Assembly (NCBI RefSeq): GCF_032191835.1
Contig: NC_083223.1
Coordinates: forward strand, 123,752,001 to 123,816,000
From: Heteronotia binoei
Lineage: Eukaryota
Direction: 5' to 3'
DNA length: 64,000 nt
The position numbers and the translations under genes were made by a program. The notes under the pieces were generated by a model. It was not told the DNA's origin, did not search any database, and saw only the letters and a program-made list of their open reading frames with translations. The first letter of the stretch is position 1. Each line of letters starts with the position of its first letter. This document shows positions 23,130 to 63,359 of this stretch, one piece after another.

Positions 23130-26100
23130 CGTTTAAAACAATTTATTGTACTGCAATATATTGTAATAACACTTATCATTTGTTATTAAAAATTAATACA
23201 TATAGATTACATTTTCTCCCCCCTCCCCCCCTTTTGGTGACCCCCGGCAGTGTATTTTAATTAAATTGCTTAAAACAAGGTAATCAATTTAGTCTGTTTA
23301 AGAATCTTCATAAAAAAGAAAGCATCATAAAGCAAAGAGAGAAAAGGAAGAAAAAACAAACAAACCATATGTTATAATTATAAACCATCTTCATAGTAAT
23401 CCTTTAGTCAATATCAAAAGAACAAAAAAAGATATATTCCAATAGTCTTGCTTTTTTACTGTAATCCATTTAACGTTCCTTTAGCATTTAATCATTGTCA
23501 AAGATCGCCAAATATCCCTTAACATTCCATTGTTTTTCAACATATTTTTGAAATTTTCCCACTCATTTTTGAACTTCTCTAAATCATGTTCTTTTACGAT
23601 TCTTGTAAACTTGTCCATTTCACTCCAATGCATAACCTTTAAAGTCCATTCCCACTTTTCTGGTAATTTGTCTTGCTTCCACATCTGCACGTATAATGTC
23701 CGAGCAGCTGAAAGCATATACTGAAGTATTGTTTTAGCTTGTTTTGGAAATTTTTCCATTTGTAATCTCAACAGAAAAATGTCTGGTGCCTTCTTAATAT
23801 TATATCCCAAAATTTTTGAAATCTCTTGCTGAATCATTTGCCAAATTTGTTTTGCCTTTTCACAAGTCCACATATGGTAGAAAGATCCCTCTTGTTTTTC
23901 CAACATCTATTTGACACCTGATTGCTCAGTTTTGCTAATTTCTTAGGTATATCACCTATATAACATACCACCTATATAACATTTAAAACAATTTTCTTTA
24001 ATATTGTAACATGTCGATATTTTCATAGAGTTCTTCCATAAGTATTCCCATGACTCCATCTGTATTTCCTTATTTATATTTATCACCCATTTTATCATTT
24101 GAGATTTAACTACTTCATCTTCCGTAGACCATTTCAATAATAGTTTATAAGTTCTTGAGATCAATTTTTCATTTTCACCAAACAGCATTCTCTCCAATTC
24201 TGTTTGTTCTTGTCTTATTCCATCATTCTTAATGTCCTGTTCAAGCAAACTCTTAATTTGTTGCAATTGAAACCAATTATATTTGTATTGTAATTCTTCA
24301 GCCAATTTTAATTCCACCTTTCTCCATGTATTTTTAAAAGTTGTTTATATGATAACCACTTCTCTTCTTTAGTGTCTGAATATAATTTTATTATTTCTGT
24401 TGGCACAATCCAAAGCGGTTTCCTCTCGTCCCCATATCTTTTATATTTTGACCAAGTATTTAGCAGGTTGCTTCTTTTATAGTGATACGAAAAAACCCAT
24501 CCATCTTATTTTTCCCGTAGTACATGTAGGCATGCCAACCAAAAACATTTCCATGACCTTCTAGTGCTAGTAATTTTCTGTTTAGTAATGTCATCCATTC
24601 CTTAATCCACACCAGGCATACTGCATCATGATACAACTTTAAATTAGGCAATTGAAATCCTCCCCTTTCTTTCGTGTCAAGAATTTCATTTTAATTCTTG
24701 GTTTTTTCCTGGCCCATACAAATTCTGCCCAGCATAGACAAATTCAACTTATTCCATTTTATCAAATCTCCATCAATCTTACGGCAAAGCTTCTCATAGT
24801 TGTTTTTGTACAGATCAAGATTTTTTGTTGTTACTTCCACACCTAAATATTCACACTCTGTTAACCTCTGTAGTTCTTTCTGTTTACTTTTTGATATATT
24901 TTTACACAAAATTTTTGACTTTTCTTTATTTATATAAAAGCCTGCCAATTCTCCATATTCTTGTATCTTACGAAGCAACAATGGTGTTACATGAGTGGGA
25001 TTTCCATTTATAAACATTACATCATCTGCAAATGCTCTGTATTTATAAGAAAAACCTTTCAACTTCAGTCCCTCTATCTCTTTGTCTTCTCGAATTTGCA
25101 TTAGCAAAACCTCTAAAGTCATTATAAATATCAATGGAGATAGAGGGCAACCTTGCTTTGTTCCTTTACTAATTATCTTTTCCCCCGTCAAATCTGCATT
25201 TACACAGAGCCTTGCTTGTTGTTCAGTATATATCGCTTTCACCATTCTTATAAAGTCTTCTCCCAATCTCAGTTTCTCCATCACTGCAAAGATAAAGTTC
25301 CAATGCACATTATCAAATGCTTTCTCTGCGTCTGCAAAAAATAATGCTACTTCTATTTCAGGATGTCTCTCATAATATTCAATAGTGTCTATAACTGTTC
25401 TGATATTATCTCTAATTTGCCTCCTGGAAGAAATCCTGCTTGCTCTTCTTTAATAAAATTGTTCAAATGCTGTTTAAGGAGCTCTGCTAAAATTCTGGCA
25501 TATATTTTATAATCATTGTTAAGTAATGAAAGTGGTCTATAGTTTTTTACATTCGTAGTGTCTCTGTCTTCTTTTGGTATCAACGAAATTACTGCTTCTT
25601 TCCATGTGTTAGGGATTTTCCCATCTATTCTTATAATATTCATCAATATCTGAAGTTTTGGTAATAGCACCTCCGTGAGGACTTTATAAAATTTTGCCGT
25701 AAAACCATCTGGACTGGGTGCTTTCCCAAATTTCATTGAATTAATTACCGCCTCTATTTCTCCTTTTTCAATTGGTTCATTAAATGCCTTCTCCATATTT
25801 TCTGTTAGGGGATTTACTTTAATTTTCTGTAAATATGCATTTTTTTTTCTATCCACCTTTTGACTTTTAAATAGCTTGGCATAATATTTATAAAATTCTC
25901 TTTTAATTCCTTCCTGATCAACAATGTCCTTACCTCCCGATACAATTTTGTTAATAACTTTATTCTCCCTTTTTTTTTTTCATTTGCCAGGCCAAATATT
26001 TTCCAGGTTTATTCGCTCCTTCAAAAGATTTCTGTTGAAGTCTTTTTTAAGTTCCATTCCACTTCTTTATTCAACAAATGTCTCAATTGGCTTTGAAATA

Positions 26101-28311
26101 TTGTAATCTCCCTTATAATTTTCTTTTTCTCAGGTCGCTTTTTAAGCTCCTTCTCTTTCTGAATGTCCATCATTTGCTTATTTTATTGTTCAGTGTAATT
26201 AAGATGACCCTCATTACTCTCTCTCTCTCGGCTTGACTTCGCGAACGAAGATTTAAGAAAGGTACAGTAGTCCACATCTGCTGCAGGCTCGCTGGTGGCT
26301 GACAAGACCAATGCGGGACAGGCAGGTCCGGCCACAGTGGCTGCAGGGAAAAGTCTGATTTGGGGTTGGTGCTGTAGCAGTGTGATTCTTCCTCAATCTC
26401 CTTTTGTCCTCAAGACCAGCTTTGCGTGCATTCTCAAAGGAAGAGACAGCCAGGTGGATGGTGTGCCTCCATGCTTTGCGATCTGAGGCCAGGTAAGACC
26501 ACTGGTGATGGTTGATGTAACAGGTACCAAGGGATTTCTTCAAGGAGACCTTGTACCTCTTCTTTGGTACCCCTCTATTTCGATGGCCGGTGGAAGGTTC
26601 GCCATACAGGGCAATCTTGGGAAGGCGGTGGTTTTCCATCCTGGAAATATGCCCTGCCCAGCACAGCTGCGTCTTCAGCAGCAGTGCCTCGATGCTTGTA
26701 ACCTCCGCCCGCTTGAGGACTTCAATGTTGGTCACAAAGTCACTCCAGTGGATGTTGAGGATGGTGCGAAGGCAGCACTGATGAAAGCGCTCAAGGAGTC
26801 GCAGGTGATGACGGTATAAAACCCACAATTTGGAGCCGTAGATGAGAGTTGTCATCACAACCGCTTTGTAAACATTGATCTTTGTGCCTTTTTTCAGCAA
26901 TCCACCTCACCCCACTGTTGGAAGCATGGGGGCACAGTACTACATAGCACACTTCACAAAGTACTTGTCACCTGCTGGGAACAAGGCAAACTACCACAGG
27001 ACTTTTGTGATGCAATCATCATTACTCTATATAAGAACAAAGGGGAAAAGTCAGACTGCTCCAACTACTGGGAGATAACCCTGCTCTCCATCGCAGGCAA
27101 AATCCTTGCTAGAATACTCCTGAACAGACTGGTGCCCACCATTGCAGAAGAACTCCTCCCAGAGAGCCAGTGCGGCTTCAGAGCTAACAGGAGCACCACC
27201 GACATGGTATTTGTTCTCAGGCAGCTCCAAGAGAAATGCAGGGAACAGAACAAGGCTCTGTATGTGACTTTTGTCGACCTTACCAAAGCTTTCGACACCG
27301 TTAGCAGGAAAGGCCTGTGGCAAATCTTGGAACGTTTAGGATGTCCTCCAAGGTTCCTCAGCATGATCATCCAGCTACATGAAGATCAGCGAGGCCATGT
27401 CAGACACTGCAATGATCTCTCGGAGCCCTTCCCAATAGGCACAGGTGTAAAGCAAGGCTGTGTTCTCGCACCAACTCTCTTTACGATCTTCTTTAGCATG
27501 ATGCTTCAAAGAGCCACAGTAGATTTAGATGATGACGATGGTGTCTACATCCGCTATCGCACCGATGGCAGCCTGTTCAACCTGAGGCGACTAAAGGCCC
27601 ACTCCAAGACAATGGAAAAACTTGTCTGAGAGCTACTGTTTGCTGATGATGCTGCACTCGTCTCCCACTCGGTATCAGCTCTGCAGCATATGATGCCCTC
27701 ATTACTACTTTATATGCATTCCACACAATTTGAAATTGAGTCTCCTCTTTTTCATTTATTTGAAATAAGTATTTAGTTTCCTTTTCCAGAGGCACCACTA
27801 TTTCCTATTTCTGTAGCAAATCTTCATTTATCCACCATTTTAGGGTCTTTATCACAGGTTTTTCAGACCACATTATTGGATTGTGGTCTGCCCCTATTTT
27901 AGGAAGAATCTTTTTTTTGTTAAAAGTCCAAGATCTTTTGTAATCCATAACATATCAATTCTCGAGAAAGAATTATGCCTTGCTGAAAAGAAAGTATAGT
28001 CACGTTCCTTGGGGTTAAATTCCCTCTATATGTCTTCCAGACTTTCTTGTTTTAACAATCAAAAAATGACTTTGGTAGTTTCCCTTCATTATTTTTTCCC
28101 CAGATCTGTCCAAAATATTTTTAACTGTTCGAATCTCCCATTATCATAATTTGCTCATACGCCACTTGATCGAATTGTTGCATAATGTCTTTAAAGAAAG
28201 AGTCTTTTGCTCCATTTGGGGCATACAGTCTCAATAACAAAGTTCTTTTGTAATTCAGCATCACTTTCACCGCAATATATCTGCCATCATTGTCTTTGAA
28301 AATCAATTTTC
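23130..28311 (-). mobile_element. L1-clade LINE, 5'-truncated within the endonuclease; decayed ORF2
   Basis: EN (LYAPN, IMGD), RT (DAEKAFD, QGCPLSP, AFADD), GSFYHMWTC; AATAAA near 23140; TSD 23109-23129 / 33202-33223. Confidence 0.92.
26219..27691 (-). mobile_element. RTE-clade LINE with 5' inversion (3' part minus, 26219 to about 26900; RT part plus, about 26900 to 27691)
   Basis: ORF 27132-27629 (ESQCGFR, DLTKAFD, GVKQGCVLAP, then FADD) and ORF 26253-26900 with C2H2-like end; (GA)n tail; TSD GATG(A)CCCTCATTACT. Confidence 0.92.
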
Positions 28312-28422: not shown

Positions 28423-28662
28423 TTTTTTTTAGTTACAAACAATTTTATTAGTAACATATGGTAATACATTTCAATTTCTTACTTCATTAATAATTACTTT
28501 TTAAAAATCTATCCCATCTATTACTTTCTACCCACCCCTCCCCCTGTTACTTAACCTCCGCCAGTGTTATATACTTAAAATTTTAATATTAAAGGTACCC
28601 TTAATTAATAAGAACCAAAATTAATATCCTCTTCCCTCTTATACTTAGTTATTATCAAAAAT
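28423..28662 (-). mobile_element. L1 3' UTR fragment with poly(A), inside Gypsy copy 1
   Basis: Reverse complement matches 62270-62498; T-run at the left end. Confidence 0.85.
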
Positions 28663-57700: not shown

Positions 57701-59999
57701 AAACAAACAAACAAATATGAAACAAGTTTAATTATTTACATTTAGGTAGATAAACAAATTACCAAGTCTGTTAGGGCAGATTTACACATTGCTACACATT
57801 ACTTGACTTTTTATGCTAGTTACTTGATGCCTTCCCATTGCCTTGCGAATGGATTCCACTGAAAAGCGCTGTACATGAGGTAACATTAAATTTATATCTA
57901 AAGTGATTGTATTTTTTACATATTCACACATAAGCCATCACATGATGCAGAAGTCACCGTTTGCAAGTGAAGCAGCTCATATGTTACTAGCTGGTGAGAG
58001 TCAGTTGCAGCTATCTGTTTTACTGATTTGGGTGTGAATAAGGAAAATGCCATTTTCCAGAAACATGATCTGGATCTGTACAATAAAAGTTACAACATTT
58101 GGAAGGGAACTATGAGAATGACAGAATAATATAGATGTAGATTCAGTGAATGTGATACGTCTGTCTGGACGTAGACTTAATTGTTTCCTAGGGCTGGCAA
58201 ATGCACAAGTTGTTCTAAAAAAAAAAAATAGACCTCTTTTCCCTGCAAGAATTTTATATTGTAATTGTGACTAATACAATATTTGGAACACAAAGAAACA
58301 GAGTAACATCAAAGGGGGGTAGAATAAAAGCATGGGATTTGCCAGATCAGATCAGATCATTGGTCCATGAAGTCTTAAAGTCTTGCTTGCAGTGGTGGTT
58401 GGCGTGTGTGTGTGTGTGGGGGGGGGGACACCCACCATATATCACAGTGTTCCAAGATATACTCCTTTAGAAATGACACAAGTAGAATTGTTTGTTTCAG
58501 ATATACTGCATCAATAAGATTGTCGATCTAGAAGGCATTTCTGATGAAGAGGAAAGCATATCTGTGACCAATATGTTGGCAAAATTCATTGTTGGGAAAA
58601 CAGTGTTCCCCTATGTCTGCCAAATTTAGTGACTGTACGGGTTATGTCTCCACAGTGTACTAAAATGTTACTTTGAATGCTAGAGCTGCTTGGAATAATT
58701 TCACTTGGACATTGTGCTTTCTCTGAAACCCTTGTTATGAACATTAATTAATGTTCCACTCCATTCACTGCTCCTTCATAGTGTTTCCTATTTTCCAGTC
58801 ATCCCCCCATTCCACATATTCATTCTTCTATCTTTTACCTTATGGAATATACTACTACTTGACAAGGAAGAATACTGATTGTTTTATTAGGTTCATGGAG
58901 AAAACATTATGACTGATAATTGTTCCAACCCTTTCTGTACAGTTTCCACAACCATTCATGAAAAACAATAAAGTCATTTTACAGTCCATATGAAATGCAA
59001 AAAAGAGATAAGTTGCACTGATAGCCTATTTACATGACTATTTGAACATGTTTTGATCATTGCTGGAAGGTGGTTTAGGGAATGTTCAGTGCACTGTGGT
59101 CAGTATACACACAAGCAACTTAACAGTGCATCCTCTGCAGTATCACACCAGTCTAAACCTTGTGTAATCCTATGCAGTTAATATATGATACTCGGGTTGG
59201 AAGTCAGCATGAAATGAAAATAATTTCTGCATTGTTTTCTGCTAGAGAAGGACATTATGCCTCTGTTCATCAAAGTAATACCATCTTAGAACCAATAACA
59301 TCAGCCAAACCATCAAACACATTTTATGCCATCATGTTCCACAACTGTCCTTCTGCCATTACATTGGGCAACCTGGATATCTGTATATAAGTGGACACAA
59401 ATCAGACATTGAAAATGGAAATAGGAACCATGGGAGAGCATTTCAGCCTCTGGACATTCTATAATAGACTTAAAAATTGGAGTATTTCAGCAGAAAAATT
59501 GCAAAGGGAGGGCCCAGTGAGAAGCTGCTGAGTTTTGTGGGAGGTCAGGAAGGCTCCTACTTTTTTGGCTTTCTAAGAACTATGCAGAACTGAACTATTC
59601 AAGAGGGCTTTTCTATGTGGGCAATAGGGTAGCACTGTATAAAATGGTTCACAAAGTTACTAGGACAAATTATTAGATACTGTGGTCTATACTACTGTGT
59701 ATAGGTTGCTGAAACTAGGACCTCACTGTGTCATTTTTGTATCATTTAATGTGTCATGTAAACACTTATGCCTTGCTTCAGTTCTGTTTTTTAGCTTTCT
59801 GGTTGGTTCTACAACCCCAGTGCTATTTCACAGTTTGTCAGATTTCCCATCCTGTTGATTGTATTGACTCATTCTGTGTATGCTACTTTGAGTCCCAGTG
59901 AGAAAGGCAGACTATAAATAAAGTTAATAAACAAGCAAAGGGTCTAACTAGTATTTCTGATTGCCATAATTTATTTTTATGTATGTATGTATGTATTCA

Positions 60000-60469
60000 T
60001 TCATTCATTCAATTTTTAAAGTTGCCATTCACCCACAGGGTCTTGTGGTGACTTACAACCTTAAAACCAGTAAGGTAAAAACAATATAAAAACAAACAAC
60101 AAGCATAAATATTACCTATAAAATATTGCAATATGTGGCTATCACCATACCACTATTAAAATAGCCCAAACCATGTGGTTACCCTCCAAGGATCAACCTA
60201 AATAACTCAGTTTTGCATGCCCTGAAGAAACTAGACAAGTCCAGCAGAGCTTGGGTGTCATCTGAGAGTGCATTCCACAAGGTAGGGGCCATGACTAAGA
60301 AGCCATCCTGGGGCCAGAAACTAAACCATCTTGGGGCCAGAAACTTGCAAGAGGCCCCTAGATGATGACCAAAGGGAGTGGGGGTTGTAATGGGAGACGT
60401 GGTCCCATATGTATAAGAGTCCTAGACTGTTGAGGGTTTTGAAGGTTAACACCAACACCTTGAATTGGA
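60000..60469 (-). mobile_element. L2 3' portion; continues at 62506 to about 62600 after the mini-L1
   Basis: Reverse complement of L2 3' end; duplicated target aacaccaacacc(t/c)gaattgga. Confidence 0.7.
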
Positions 60470-62505
60470 GACTTCTGGGGGAGGAAAATGTCGAGCTGAG
60501 CTGCTTCTCACAATGGGAGCAGGCTGGAACTTCTGTTCGGGGTAGTGGAAGGCAAATTAATGCCTACTGCCTACTTTTCTCAGTCAGAGATTAGTCCAAG
60601 ATATGCACAGGAAACTTTGAGGAGATTTACCTTGGCTTAAAAGAAGTCCCGGGGGGAGGGGGGCGGCTTCTTTGAGGCTTTGAGGGGTCTCTGGGAAGAG
60701 TTGCATTTTCATCATCTGCAGAAGTTTTTCAGAGTCATTTATTTGACATAAGCTCGGCAGGATCCTAACCTTCTTGGACATTGCTAAACATCTAAAGCTT
60801 TGCAAGACCAGTGGAAACTTGGATAATTGGAAGAAAAGGTACAGATAACTATCTTTCATTCTGGAACTATTTACAGCTTAAAGATACAAATTTAAAAGGT
60901 GGGAAAGGAAAATTTAGAGAGCTTGGAAGAAGAGGGGAGGAAGAGGTGAAATTTGGACTTTATAAATATAAAGTACAGTGTTAAAAACTGTTAAAAAGTG
61001 GAAAGGAATTTATTGTTTAGTCTACTTGCGGTTTTGGAAGAAAAAGCACCATCGTCATATTGGCACAGACCTGCAGTACATCTGAGCAAGACAGGAAATA
61101 TGTCAAGTATCGTGAGATCTCCTTACCAGTGTGAATGAGACTTCATGGCAACAAAAGCAGGAAGTAGTGGAAAGAAAACCTACTCTAGGAATATATACCA
61201 TTGAGAAACATCGGCAACCATTGCTGGGAGGCCAAAATAAAAATTATTTTTTTTAAAGAATTCGGGATATTAAAAATCGTTGGAATTGAGAAGAGAGTAA
61301 GAAGATAAATACTATTGGTCATATTATTTGTGTGGTCCTCGAAAGTTTTTAAAAGGGAAAAAAAATCGCAAGGAGCAGTAAAAAGTTGCGACCGCCATTT
61401 TGGAAGATTTAAAAACTTTAAAAATAAATATCTTGTCTTTGGGAGCTCTGAGGATGGTGAAATTGGGCTTGTTATAAAGGGCAAGTCCTACTCTTTTGAA
61501 CCTGATAGTTGAATTGGAAATTGGTGAGGTCCAAAATTTTGGTTTTTTTAAAAGGGTTTAAAAGTTTTAAAAATTAATATCTTGGTCTACGAAGCTCTGA
61601 GGATGGCGAAATTAGGCTTGTTATAAAAAGCAAGCTCTAATATTTTGAATCTGATAGTTAAATTTTAAATTTGTGAGATTAAAATTTTTGGTGTTTTTAA
61701 ATGTCTGAACACAAGCAGCCCCGTACAAGGGCAACGTCATTGGAAAAAATGCAGGACCAATTAGAGGCAATGGAGGCCAGAATGATGAAAGGGGTGAGAG
61801 AGATGATAGATGAATCGAAAAAAGAAATTATTGCAGAGATTAGAAAAGACATGGAAGATCTTAGAAAGGAAACTGAGGAAACATCTAAGAAAGTGCAGGA
61901 GGTAGAAGGCAAAATGAAAATATATGATTCCACCTTGTTGAAAATGCAAGAAAAAGTGACAATCCATGACTGCAAATTGATGGAGATCCAGATACGTCTG
62001 AGAGGAGTACCTGAAGGGGAGGATGGTGATTTAAAAGGAGATAGAACTTTAATCTGGTACTTGCTTTCAGCTGCTAGGACATTGTATGCGCAGTTGTGGA
62101 AGCAAGAAAAAATACCAGAGAAATGGGATTGGATTATAAAAGTTATGACATGGAGTGAAATGGACAAATTAACAAGAATATTAAGAGACTATGATTTAGA
62201 AGTTTTTAAGATGGAGTGGAAAAAGTTTAGAAGATATATAGAAAAAGAGTGGAAAATAAAAGGACATTGGACAATTTTTGATAATAATTAAGTTTTAAAA
62301 AGAAGAAGAATATAATTTCTTGTTTTAATAGTTAAGGGTACCTTTAATATATATATTTTAAGTAAATAACACTGGCGGGGGTCAAGTAACGGGGGGAGGG
62401 ATGGGTGGAAAGTAATATATGGGGTAGATAAAAGAATTTTTTAAAGATGTAAGATATAGATATAGATTTATTACCATATGTTACTAATAAAATTGTTTTA
62501 CCATG
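60470..62505 (+). mobile_element. Internally deleted L1 (5' UTR, ORF1 N-terminus, ORF2 C-terminus, 3' UTR)
   Basis: 22-bp TSD 60448-60469 / 62506-62527; AATAAA near 62486; 3' UTR matches 28423-28662. Confidence 0.88.
61701..62291 (+). CDS. 196-aa ORF1 coiled-coil / ORF2 C-terminus fusion ORF
   Basis: Coiled coil up to IRLRGVPE, then YLLSAARTLYAQLWKQ homologous to ORF 23481-23906. Confidence 0.75.
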   Translation: MSEHKQPRTRATSLEKMQDQLEAMEARMMKGVREMIDESKKEIIAEIRKDMEDLRKETEETSKKVQEVEGKMKIYDSTLLKMQEKVTIHDCKLMEIQIRLRGVPEGEDGDLKGDRTLIWYLLSAARTLYAQLWKQEKIPEKWDWIIKVMTWSEMDKLTRILRDYDLEVFKMEWKKFRRYIEKEWKIKGHWTIFDNN

Positions 62506-62838
62506 AACACCAACACCTCGAATTGGATCTGGAGACTAATTGGTAGCGAGTGCAACTGCCTCAGAATCTGAGTAATATGAACTGATAATGATGTTCCATT
62601 AGTAACCTCACAGCTACATTCTGGAACACCTGCAGTTTCTGAAGCATTTTGAAGAGTAGCCCTATGTACTATGAATTACAGTAGCCAATCTGGAGGTGGC
62701 TGTTGCATGGATCAAGGTGGTTTATCATTGCTTCTGAGAGTGAGAAAACCAGGCTAGCTAGCTCAGAGTAATGCACAATAGGAGTGTAATATTTTCAAAA
62801 AGAACTAGGCAAGTCACCTACCTATTGTAAAGACCCCC

Positions 62839-63359
62839 TGTCATGATCCGAGGCCTAGTGAGGCCTACAGGCTCCAGAGAAGTCTGTGTTAGAGTAGAGA
62901 GGGCCTACATTTCCCAGGACCCCTTCTGTCCCTCTGATTGGGTGGATAGCAATTTGGGAGGGAAAACTTGCTCTGTGCAGATCAGAGGGGTGGGACCTGG
63001 AAAGAAGGAAATAAAAGGCCCAGCTAGAGAGGGGAAAGTATTCTCTTTGGAAAGGCTGCAGCAGGATTCCCTCCCCCAAGGGGTGGTGAGTCTGTTGGCA
63101 TTAGAGGCAGAGAACATTTAGTTAGTCACATCAGGGGTCTTATTTTCTTTGCATTACCTTTAGTGTTTTCATATTCACTGTTGCACTAAAAGTTTTTACA
63201 ATCTGCTTGTTTCTTCTCAAGCACTTATAATAAACTGTTGTTGTTATACTGCCTGGATTCTCACATCTGTTTGGTCATGGATAGAAGACAGACCCGTACC
63301 AGAGTGGTGGCAGCCAGTAGAGGCCCTCCCCAGTCCCTTTCTTGTAACACCCTGTGACA
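62839..63359 (+). mobile_element. Probable solo LTR (Gypsy-like); a further LTR-like sequence may run to the window end
   Basis: TGTCA...TGACA termini; ATAAAA near 63011; AATAAA near 63228; no convincing TSD. Confidence 0.5.

Follow-up and report, generated by a model that had tools for sequence, protein, structure and literature searches.

How does an L1 come to lie in a genome with both of its ends and its target-site duplication (TSD) in place and its enzymatic core gone, and does the open reading frame (ORF) left inside it serve any function? These questions are raised by a 2036-bp element of Heteronotia binoei, here called mini-L1, which occupies 60470–62505 (+) of a 64-kb window of NC_083223.1; the window is the whole stretch of DNA that was analysed, and the bounds of the element are taken from the two TSD copies. 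Our analysis identifies mini-L1 as a defective derivative of an L1, produced by deletion, which may belong to a small non-autonomous family.

Termini, insertion site and untranslated regions

Sequences of organism A, comprising the RNA-seq runs X11 and X12, the RNA contigs X1 and the DNA contigs X4, were aligned to 59700–63300 at 90% likeness. Depth is 30- to 500-fold over the element and close to nil over its unique flanks. Since the flanks are bare and most reads are only 90–95% alike, the reads are those of other L1 family copies, and they serve below as a picture of the full-length parents. The outer features of the element are as follows.

60448–60469 (+): 5′ copy of the TSD, 22 nt, a direct repeat 95% identical to 62506–62527
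60470–61700 (+): L1 5′UTR, 1231 bp, leading directly to the ORF1 ATG; family RNA reads reach 60470
61408–61701 (+): two tandem 149-bp monomers (TRF: period 149, 2.0 copies, 82% match), adjoining the ATG
62292–62505 (+): 3′UTR, 214 bp, with AATAAA at 62486–62491 and 81% nucleotide identity to 28437–28662 (−)
62506–62527 (+): 3′ copy of the TSD, 22 nt, with one mismatch against the 5′ copy

On the top strand the target reads GGTT followed by AACACC, so that TT precedes the duplicated target and AA opens it. The bottom-strand nick would have been TGTT/AA, as read from these flanking letters, an L1-endonuclease-type site. TGTT/AA is the kind of site that the L1 endonuclease uses by established preference. 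The preference is restated in a study of spliced human L1 retrocopies (PMC5860796). A T-rich/A endonuclease target accompanied by a TSD is characteristic of the L1 clade, and the 22-nt TSD taken with the endonuclease-type target shows a single event of target-primed reverse transcription (TPRT) with both element termini intact. The flanks at 60063–60447 and 62528–62845 are unique within the 64-kb window. Two short flanking stretches, 59821–59941 and 62846–62966, carry RNA and DNA contigs to a depth typical of repeats, the other flanking sequence being bare, and are probably other small repeats. The window also holds a run of N at 1176–1304.

The 5′ end of mini-L1 is shared with another copy. 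A 367-nt DNA contig of that copy matches 60470–60550 and departs exactly at 60470, and because its alignment stops exactly there, 60470 is a genuine 5′ terminus of the family. Both parental termini are kept around the internal deletion, as in internally deleted non-autonomous LINE families of the RIME/SIDE kind. The preliminary description of this DNA had reported both L1 ends and a 22-bp TSD, which is borne out by the copies at 60448–60469 and 62506–62527 with their one mismatch and by the 5′ end in common with the other copy. With 36% A and 12% C, the sense strand has the A-rich, C-poor composition of lizard and mammalian L1s (PMC5381506).

The 5′UTR presumably acts as an internal promoter. 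Its monomer pair at 61408–61701 was also found as a direct repeat, and some family RNA reads skip 148–160 nt and others step back by 138 nt with 11 inserted letters; because of these two forms, other copies are taken to carry one or three monomers. The stretch is a variable, monomeric, promoter-like array in a lizard L1 that is reminiscent of the monomers of mouse L1. At the opposite end, AATAAA lies 14 nt before the end of the element and the TSD comes next, with no A-run beyond the AA that opens the TSD. Two DNA contigs of other family copies run into A-runs after 62498. AATAAA followed by a poly(A) tail has been stated for all vertebrate L1s (PMC5381506). The 5′UTR with its monomers and the 3′UTR with its AATAAA are the parts that an RNA needs for transcription and for pick-up by the L1 machinery, and both are kept.

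The fusion ORF and its junction

Between the two untranslated regions lies one ORF, assembled from both proteins of an L1.

61701–62291 (+), stop codon included: fusion ORF of 196 aa, with an ATG start and no internal stop
61701–62039 (+): ORF1-derived part, with the N-terminus, ~13 coiled-coil heptads and the first RRM strand (LRGVPE)
62033–62039 (+): deletion junction, a 4–6 nt microhomology common to both parents, AAAG (X11 form) or AAAGGA (X12 form)
62034–62288 (+): C-terminal tail of ORF2, 84–85 codons, downstream of the Cys-His knuckle

A stop-free 196-aa ORF that fuses the ORF1 coiled coil to the last ~83 aa of ORF2 had been described beforehand, and this reading stands, with a tail of 84–85 residues. 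The loss of the RNA-binding domains, endonuclease and RT, also described, is equally evident, since mini-L1 carries no RRM body, CTD, EN or RT. It does not qualify as an autonomous L1: on the sense strand no ORF reaches 100 aa except the 196-aa fusion, and this has neither an EN nor an RT domain.

The parentage of the two halves follows from their homologs. Residues 28–124 of the fusion align with P0063, which is an ORF1-like protein from the skink Tiliqua scincoides (BLASTP, 30% identity, E 7e-13). P0063 in turn matches the human LINE-1 ORF1p structures 2ykp/2yko (E 5e-5), and its LRLRGVPE aligns on the human counterpart LRLIGVPE, which is the start of the RRM. Residues 112–181 match residues 1163–1232 of the 1245-aa Podarcis muralis ORF2 P0096 (BLASTP, E 6e-14), a protein that carries Pfam Exo_endo_phos and RVT_1 (endonuclease and RT). 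Mini-L1 has in these parts the features of the L1 clade, namely an ORF1 of the coiled-coil and RRM type and an ORF2 with homology to a protein of APE endonuclease and RT. The ORF2 tail also shares 53% amino acid identity with the window's own L1 at 23508–23744 (−).

That neighbor belongs to a 5′-truncated L1 at about 23480–26200 (−) with a decayed ORF2, in which the RT, the Cys-His knuckle and the tail are spread over three frames with many stops. The earlier statement that the other L1s here are riddled with stops holds for this L1. A separate 225-bp fragment of an L1 3′ end lies at 28437–28662 (−) and is the window's partner of the mini-L1 3′UTR.

HMMER searches of 1.84 billion representatives gave 92 matches to the fusion protein, 91 of which fall on the ORF2 tail and one of which is ORF1-like; the nearest named sources among them are squamates. 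None of the representatives is a homologous fusion protein. P0003, which appeared to span the junction, was rejected as an ordinary ORF2 C-terminus. Pfam gave no family above threshold for the fusion ORF, with sub-threshold coiled-coil noise only, and a PDB sequence search with the fusion protein likewise returned only coiled-coil noise. The heptad pattern is regular: a/d positions can be followed over residues 8–105, with hydrophobic residues at 62–88% of them versus 5–25% elsewhere. The AF2 single-sequence model predicts one helix over residues 10–100, with pLDDT of 73–89 over residues 10–70 and below 50 in the ORF2 tail. On the opposite strand, an ORF of 156 aa at 61697–62167 (−) overlaps the fusion ORF, and most likely arises from the base composition of the sense strand, whose wealth of A and scarcity of C make stops rare on the other strand.

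Other occurrences of the junction were sought in several collections. In collections without this lizard genome, word-index protein searches found no match to the whole ORF, to residues 80–196 or to a 50-aa junction piece, and an exact-sequence look-up in a collection that is likewise without it returned no record. Metagenome scans with a 23-nt junction pattern and with the protein found nothing; these too are of material other than this lizard genome. Little can be drawn from these blanks, since even the ORF2 tail of the family, common as it is among the reads, has no entry in those collections.

The junction itself can be read from the points at which the full-length parents leave mini-L1. 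Reads of full-length ORF1 depart after 62014 and then, past a variable acidic stretch, read ...GATTTGAAAG, with AATATAT next in X11 or GATATAT in X12. Reads of full-length ORF2 enter at 62033 and are preceded by ...ATGGAAAAATTTCC, which encodes ...MEKFP before KGDRTL. Beyond AAAG or AAAGGA at 62033–62039 the two parents have no overlap, and the K-G codons at the join belong to both. A join near 62038, with GDLKG joined to DRTL, had been proposed; this is right to within the microhomology, the breakpoint lying somewhere in 62033–62039. The deletion took away all of ORF1 beyond codon ~112, the spacer and ~1160 codons of ORF2, a loss of ~4 kb as estimated from the sizes of relatives. ORF1 is cut ~10 residues past its first RRM strand and is there fused to the ORF2 tail.

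Among the three origins that had been considered for mini-L1, namely a chance deletion, a spliced L1 RNA and a non-autonomous family, the second would make the element a retrocopy of an RNA from which an intron reaching from ORF1 to the end of ORF2 had been removed. The join does follow AG on the ORF2 side (CCAAAAG followed by G), and retrocopies of spliced L1 RNA, called SpIREs, are known in humans (PMC5860796). Nevertheless, when the cut is slid over the whole microhomology, the would-be intron opens with AA, AA, AG, GA/GG, AA/GA, AT or TA. No GT/GC...AG or AT...AC is found at any allowed cut in the parental consensus sequences of X11 and X12, and the lone AT case ends in GG. A spliced origin is rejected because none of these dinucleotide pairs occurs at any cut that the microhomology permits, and we give it next to no chance; the join is a microhomology-mediated deletion and not a splice. 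With SpIREs, which are mostly dead ends (PMC5860796), mini-L1 shares the form of an internally deleted L1 RNA that was reverse-transcribed and inserted with normal L1 hallmarks. Their junctions lie at a splice donor and acceptor, whereas the junction of mini-L1 is a microhomology without GT...AG. Membership among the SpIREs was rejected, as the deletion boundaries are without splice dinucleotides.

Two details next to the junction allow more than one reading. A depth of ~32 was seen in X11 beside 62028, inside an 18-nt stretch that neither clipped parent covers (62015–62032), and reflects either bridging reads or ORF1 reads of a closer subfamily. The acidic stretch at 62013–62037 differs from the read majority at 8 of its 25 nucleotides (PEGEDGDLK in mini-L1 versus PEDEETDLK in the majority), with the same length and frame, and the neighboring sequence is ~95% alike. 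The divergence is either that of a hypervariable linker or a sign that mini-L1 originated from a minor subfamily.

Expression and apparent neutrality of the copy

In X11 and X12, little or none of the family RNA comes from this locus. At 61217 the reads differ from the window letter in 84/84 cases in X11 and in 81/82 in X12; at 61296 they do so in 29/29 and 34/34, and at 61862 in 100/100 and 95/95. At several private letters, 0–1% of the family RNA reads match mini-L1 in X11 and X12 (~30–100 reads per run). The locus 60470–62505 supplies at most about 1% of the family RNA and is silent in these two samples, which are of unstated tissue and from animals that may differ from the reference. Expression of the locus, as looked for in a selected or domesticated L1-derived gene of the L1TD1 kind, was not found in X11 or X12. 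Along the whole element the family RNA reads of both runs have the two mate orientations in about equal numbers, which reflects either unstranded libraries or read-through of L1 copies on both strands. Because the orientations are about equal, the reads give no evidence that a promoter drives transcription of the sense strand.

The copy is not young, as judged from the TSD mismatch, its many private letters and the 90–95% likeness of most reads. Private indels are present, including a 10-nt duplication near 60979–60997 that is absent from other copies. Private differences were counted at the best-supported places, so that the counts are lower bounds: mini-L1 differs from the read majority at no fewer than 8 of 588 positions in the ORF and at about 20 or more of 1231 in the 5′UTR, a similar density. 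The eight best-supported private changes in the ORF comprise three synonymous and five non-synonymous ones, all of the latter conservative, and are too few for a test of selection. The private changes of mini-L1 look neutral, as expected without constraint.

The state of the frame can be accounted for in the same way. The chance of an in-frame join is 1 in 3. In the fusion frame, 7% of random substitutions create a stop, and with some 10–15 private substitutions and a few opportunities for indels the chance of the frame staying open is ~0.2–0.4. With chances of this size, neither the in-frame join nor the open frame calls for selection.

A selected gene would be the alternative. The protein of coiled coil and ORF2 tail would then be either a dominant-negative that poisons ORF1p trimers or a device that pulls parental ORF1p onto the mini-L1 RNA. 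Its N-terminus and ~13 coiled-coil heptads are intact, and its ORF is open while the neighboring L1 has decayed. There is also a precedent, for truncated human ORF1p with exactly these parts, the N-terminus and the coiled coil, suppresses L1 in trans in cell culture (Sokolowski et al. 2017, PMC5605252). The human proteins and the mini-L1 product are alike in having these parts of ORF1p without a working RNA-binding module; they differ in that the former are human and were tested in cultured cells, whereas the latter is known from sequence, is not detectably expressed in X11 or X12 and has an 85-residue ORF2 tail attached. The transcription that such a gene would need is not detectable for this copy in X11 or X12, and the three synonymous to five non-synonymous changes, with a density of differences in the ORF like that in the 5′UTR, give no hint of constraint. 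Moreover, chance would leave the frame open in about one to two out of five equally old copies, and a homologous fusion is missing from the 1.84 billion representatives. A selected gene is accordingly regarded as very improbable. The suggestion in the preliminary description that an ORF1 fragment could act as a dominant-negative regulator is not a new idea; it has its precedent in the human work (PMC5605252), but it finds no support at this locus, which is not detectably transcribed and whose changes look neutral, and for mini-L1 it is speculation.

Origin of the deletion and relation to known LINE derivatives

When the ~4 kb were lost relative to the insertion is a separate question. The L1 was probably already mini when it inserted at 60470, a timing that we infer in part from the 5′ terminus, which coincides with that of another genomic copy. 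Two considerations weigh against this order of events. No second copy with the junction has been seen, in searches that did not cover this genome, and a 4–6 nt microhomology is equally a signature of chromosomal end-joining repair after insertion.

If the deletion preceded or accompanied insertion, an L1 template would have lost ~4 kb, from ORF1 codon ~112 to the last ~85 codons of ORF2, the remaining parts being joined at the microhomology of 4–6 nt. This could have happened in two ways. In the first, the reverse transcriptase, in copying an L1 RNA, would have skipped from one AAAGGA-like site to another. It is established that non-LTR reverse transcriptases can jump templates. Such a one-off jump during TPRT is nonetheless unlikely to be what took place here. 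In the second, an earlier deletion in a source copy would have left the promoter monomers, a translatable ORF and the 3′UTR, and the RNA of this source may then have been mobilized in trans by full-length L1s to give a small non-autonomous family. We put the chance of a multi-copy family that arose by such mobilization at about even. L1 proteins prefer their own RNA in cis. Because of this preference, repeated trans-mobilization of an RNA without ORF2 would be inefficient. By either way, the insertion would have proceeded by ordinary TPRT from a TGTT/AA nick, leaving the 22-nt TSD, a complete 5′ end and almost no poly(A). The fusion ORF would be a by-product, joined in frame by chance and not yet closed by the few private changes of the copy. 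The inserted copy is now transcriptionally silent, as seen in X11 and X12, and would be drifting.

Alternatively, a full-length L1 of ~6 kb could have inserted and lost ~4 kb afterwards through microhomology-mediated end joining or replication slippage, in which case the ORF would be accidental and no family would exist. A microhomology of 4–6 nt is the classic mark of end joining, and the copy is not young and hence had time for such an event. Deletions of this kind after insertion are documented in non-LTR elements, for example Hebe (PMC2861651), and the junction has been seen in no other copy, although the collections searched are without this genome. On the other hand, both breakpoints are internal and the promoter and the 3′ end are exactly intact, an outcome with which chance is also compatible. 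Deletion after insertion is a possible but doubtful account, and a mini-L1 that was short on arrival is the one we favor.

Microhomology-associated internal deletions have been described in Hebe of Adineta vaga and in GilD of Giardia (PMC2861651). Like mini-L1, these elements keep their termini and lack interior sequence, with short microhomologies at the breakpoints. The deletions of Hebe are of 12–200 bp and were read as chromosomal repair, whereas mini-L1 lost ~4 kb and may have done so before, during or after insertion.

A close comparison in mammals is with HAL1 (half-L1), a group of L1 derivatives that are non-autonomous (Bao and Jurka 2010, as cited in PMC5753468). As far as that account describes them, HAL1 elements are L1-derived, are without endonuclease and RT, keep the L1 ends and an ORF1-derived frame, and need full-length L1s, and in all of this mini-L1 is like them. 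By the same account, HAL1 has a complete ORF1p and no ORF2, whereas the ORF1 of mini-L1 stops at ~112 and is followed by 84–85 ORF2 codons; HAL1 is moreover a proven multi-copy family and mini-L1 is not. Membership in HAL1 was rejected, since the ORF1 is incomplete and a piece of ORF2 is present. Mini-L1 falls in the broad group of LINE derivatives with internal deletions. RIME/ingi of trypanosomes is an example from this group, and RIME shows that the product of a deletion can become a family.

A multi-copy family of mini-L1 could in principle go further, with its fusion ORF under selection. Nascent coiled coils of the fusion protein would co-assemble with full-length ORF1p and thereby recruit the RNA-binding domains of the parent, and then ORF2p, to the mini-L1 RNA. 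We regard this as improbable. If true, it would make mini-L1 a protein-coding hyper-parasite of L1 that evades cis-preference, and that damps its parent dominant-negatively as a side effect.

As a single locus, mini-L1 is of little consequence, a clear case of an enzymatic core lost at a microhomology with the hallmarks of insertion kept. Squamate L1s are diverse, mostly full-length and of low copy number. If the junction recurs genome-wide, it would provide a natural test of whether trimerization of ORF1p alone can hijack the machinery of the parent. It would equally be a natural test of whether coiled-coil fragments of ORF1 restrain L1, as truncated human ORF1p does (PMC5605252).
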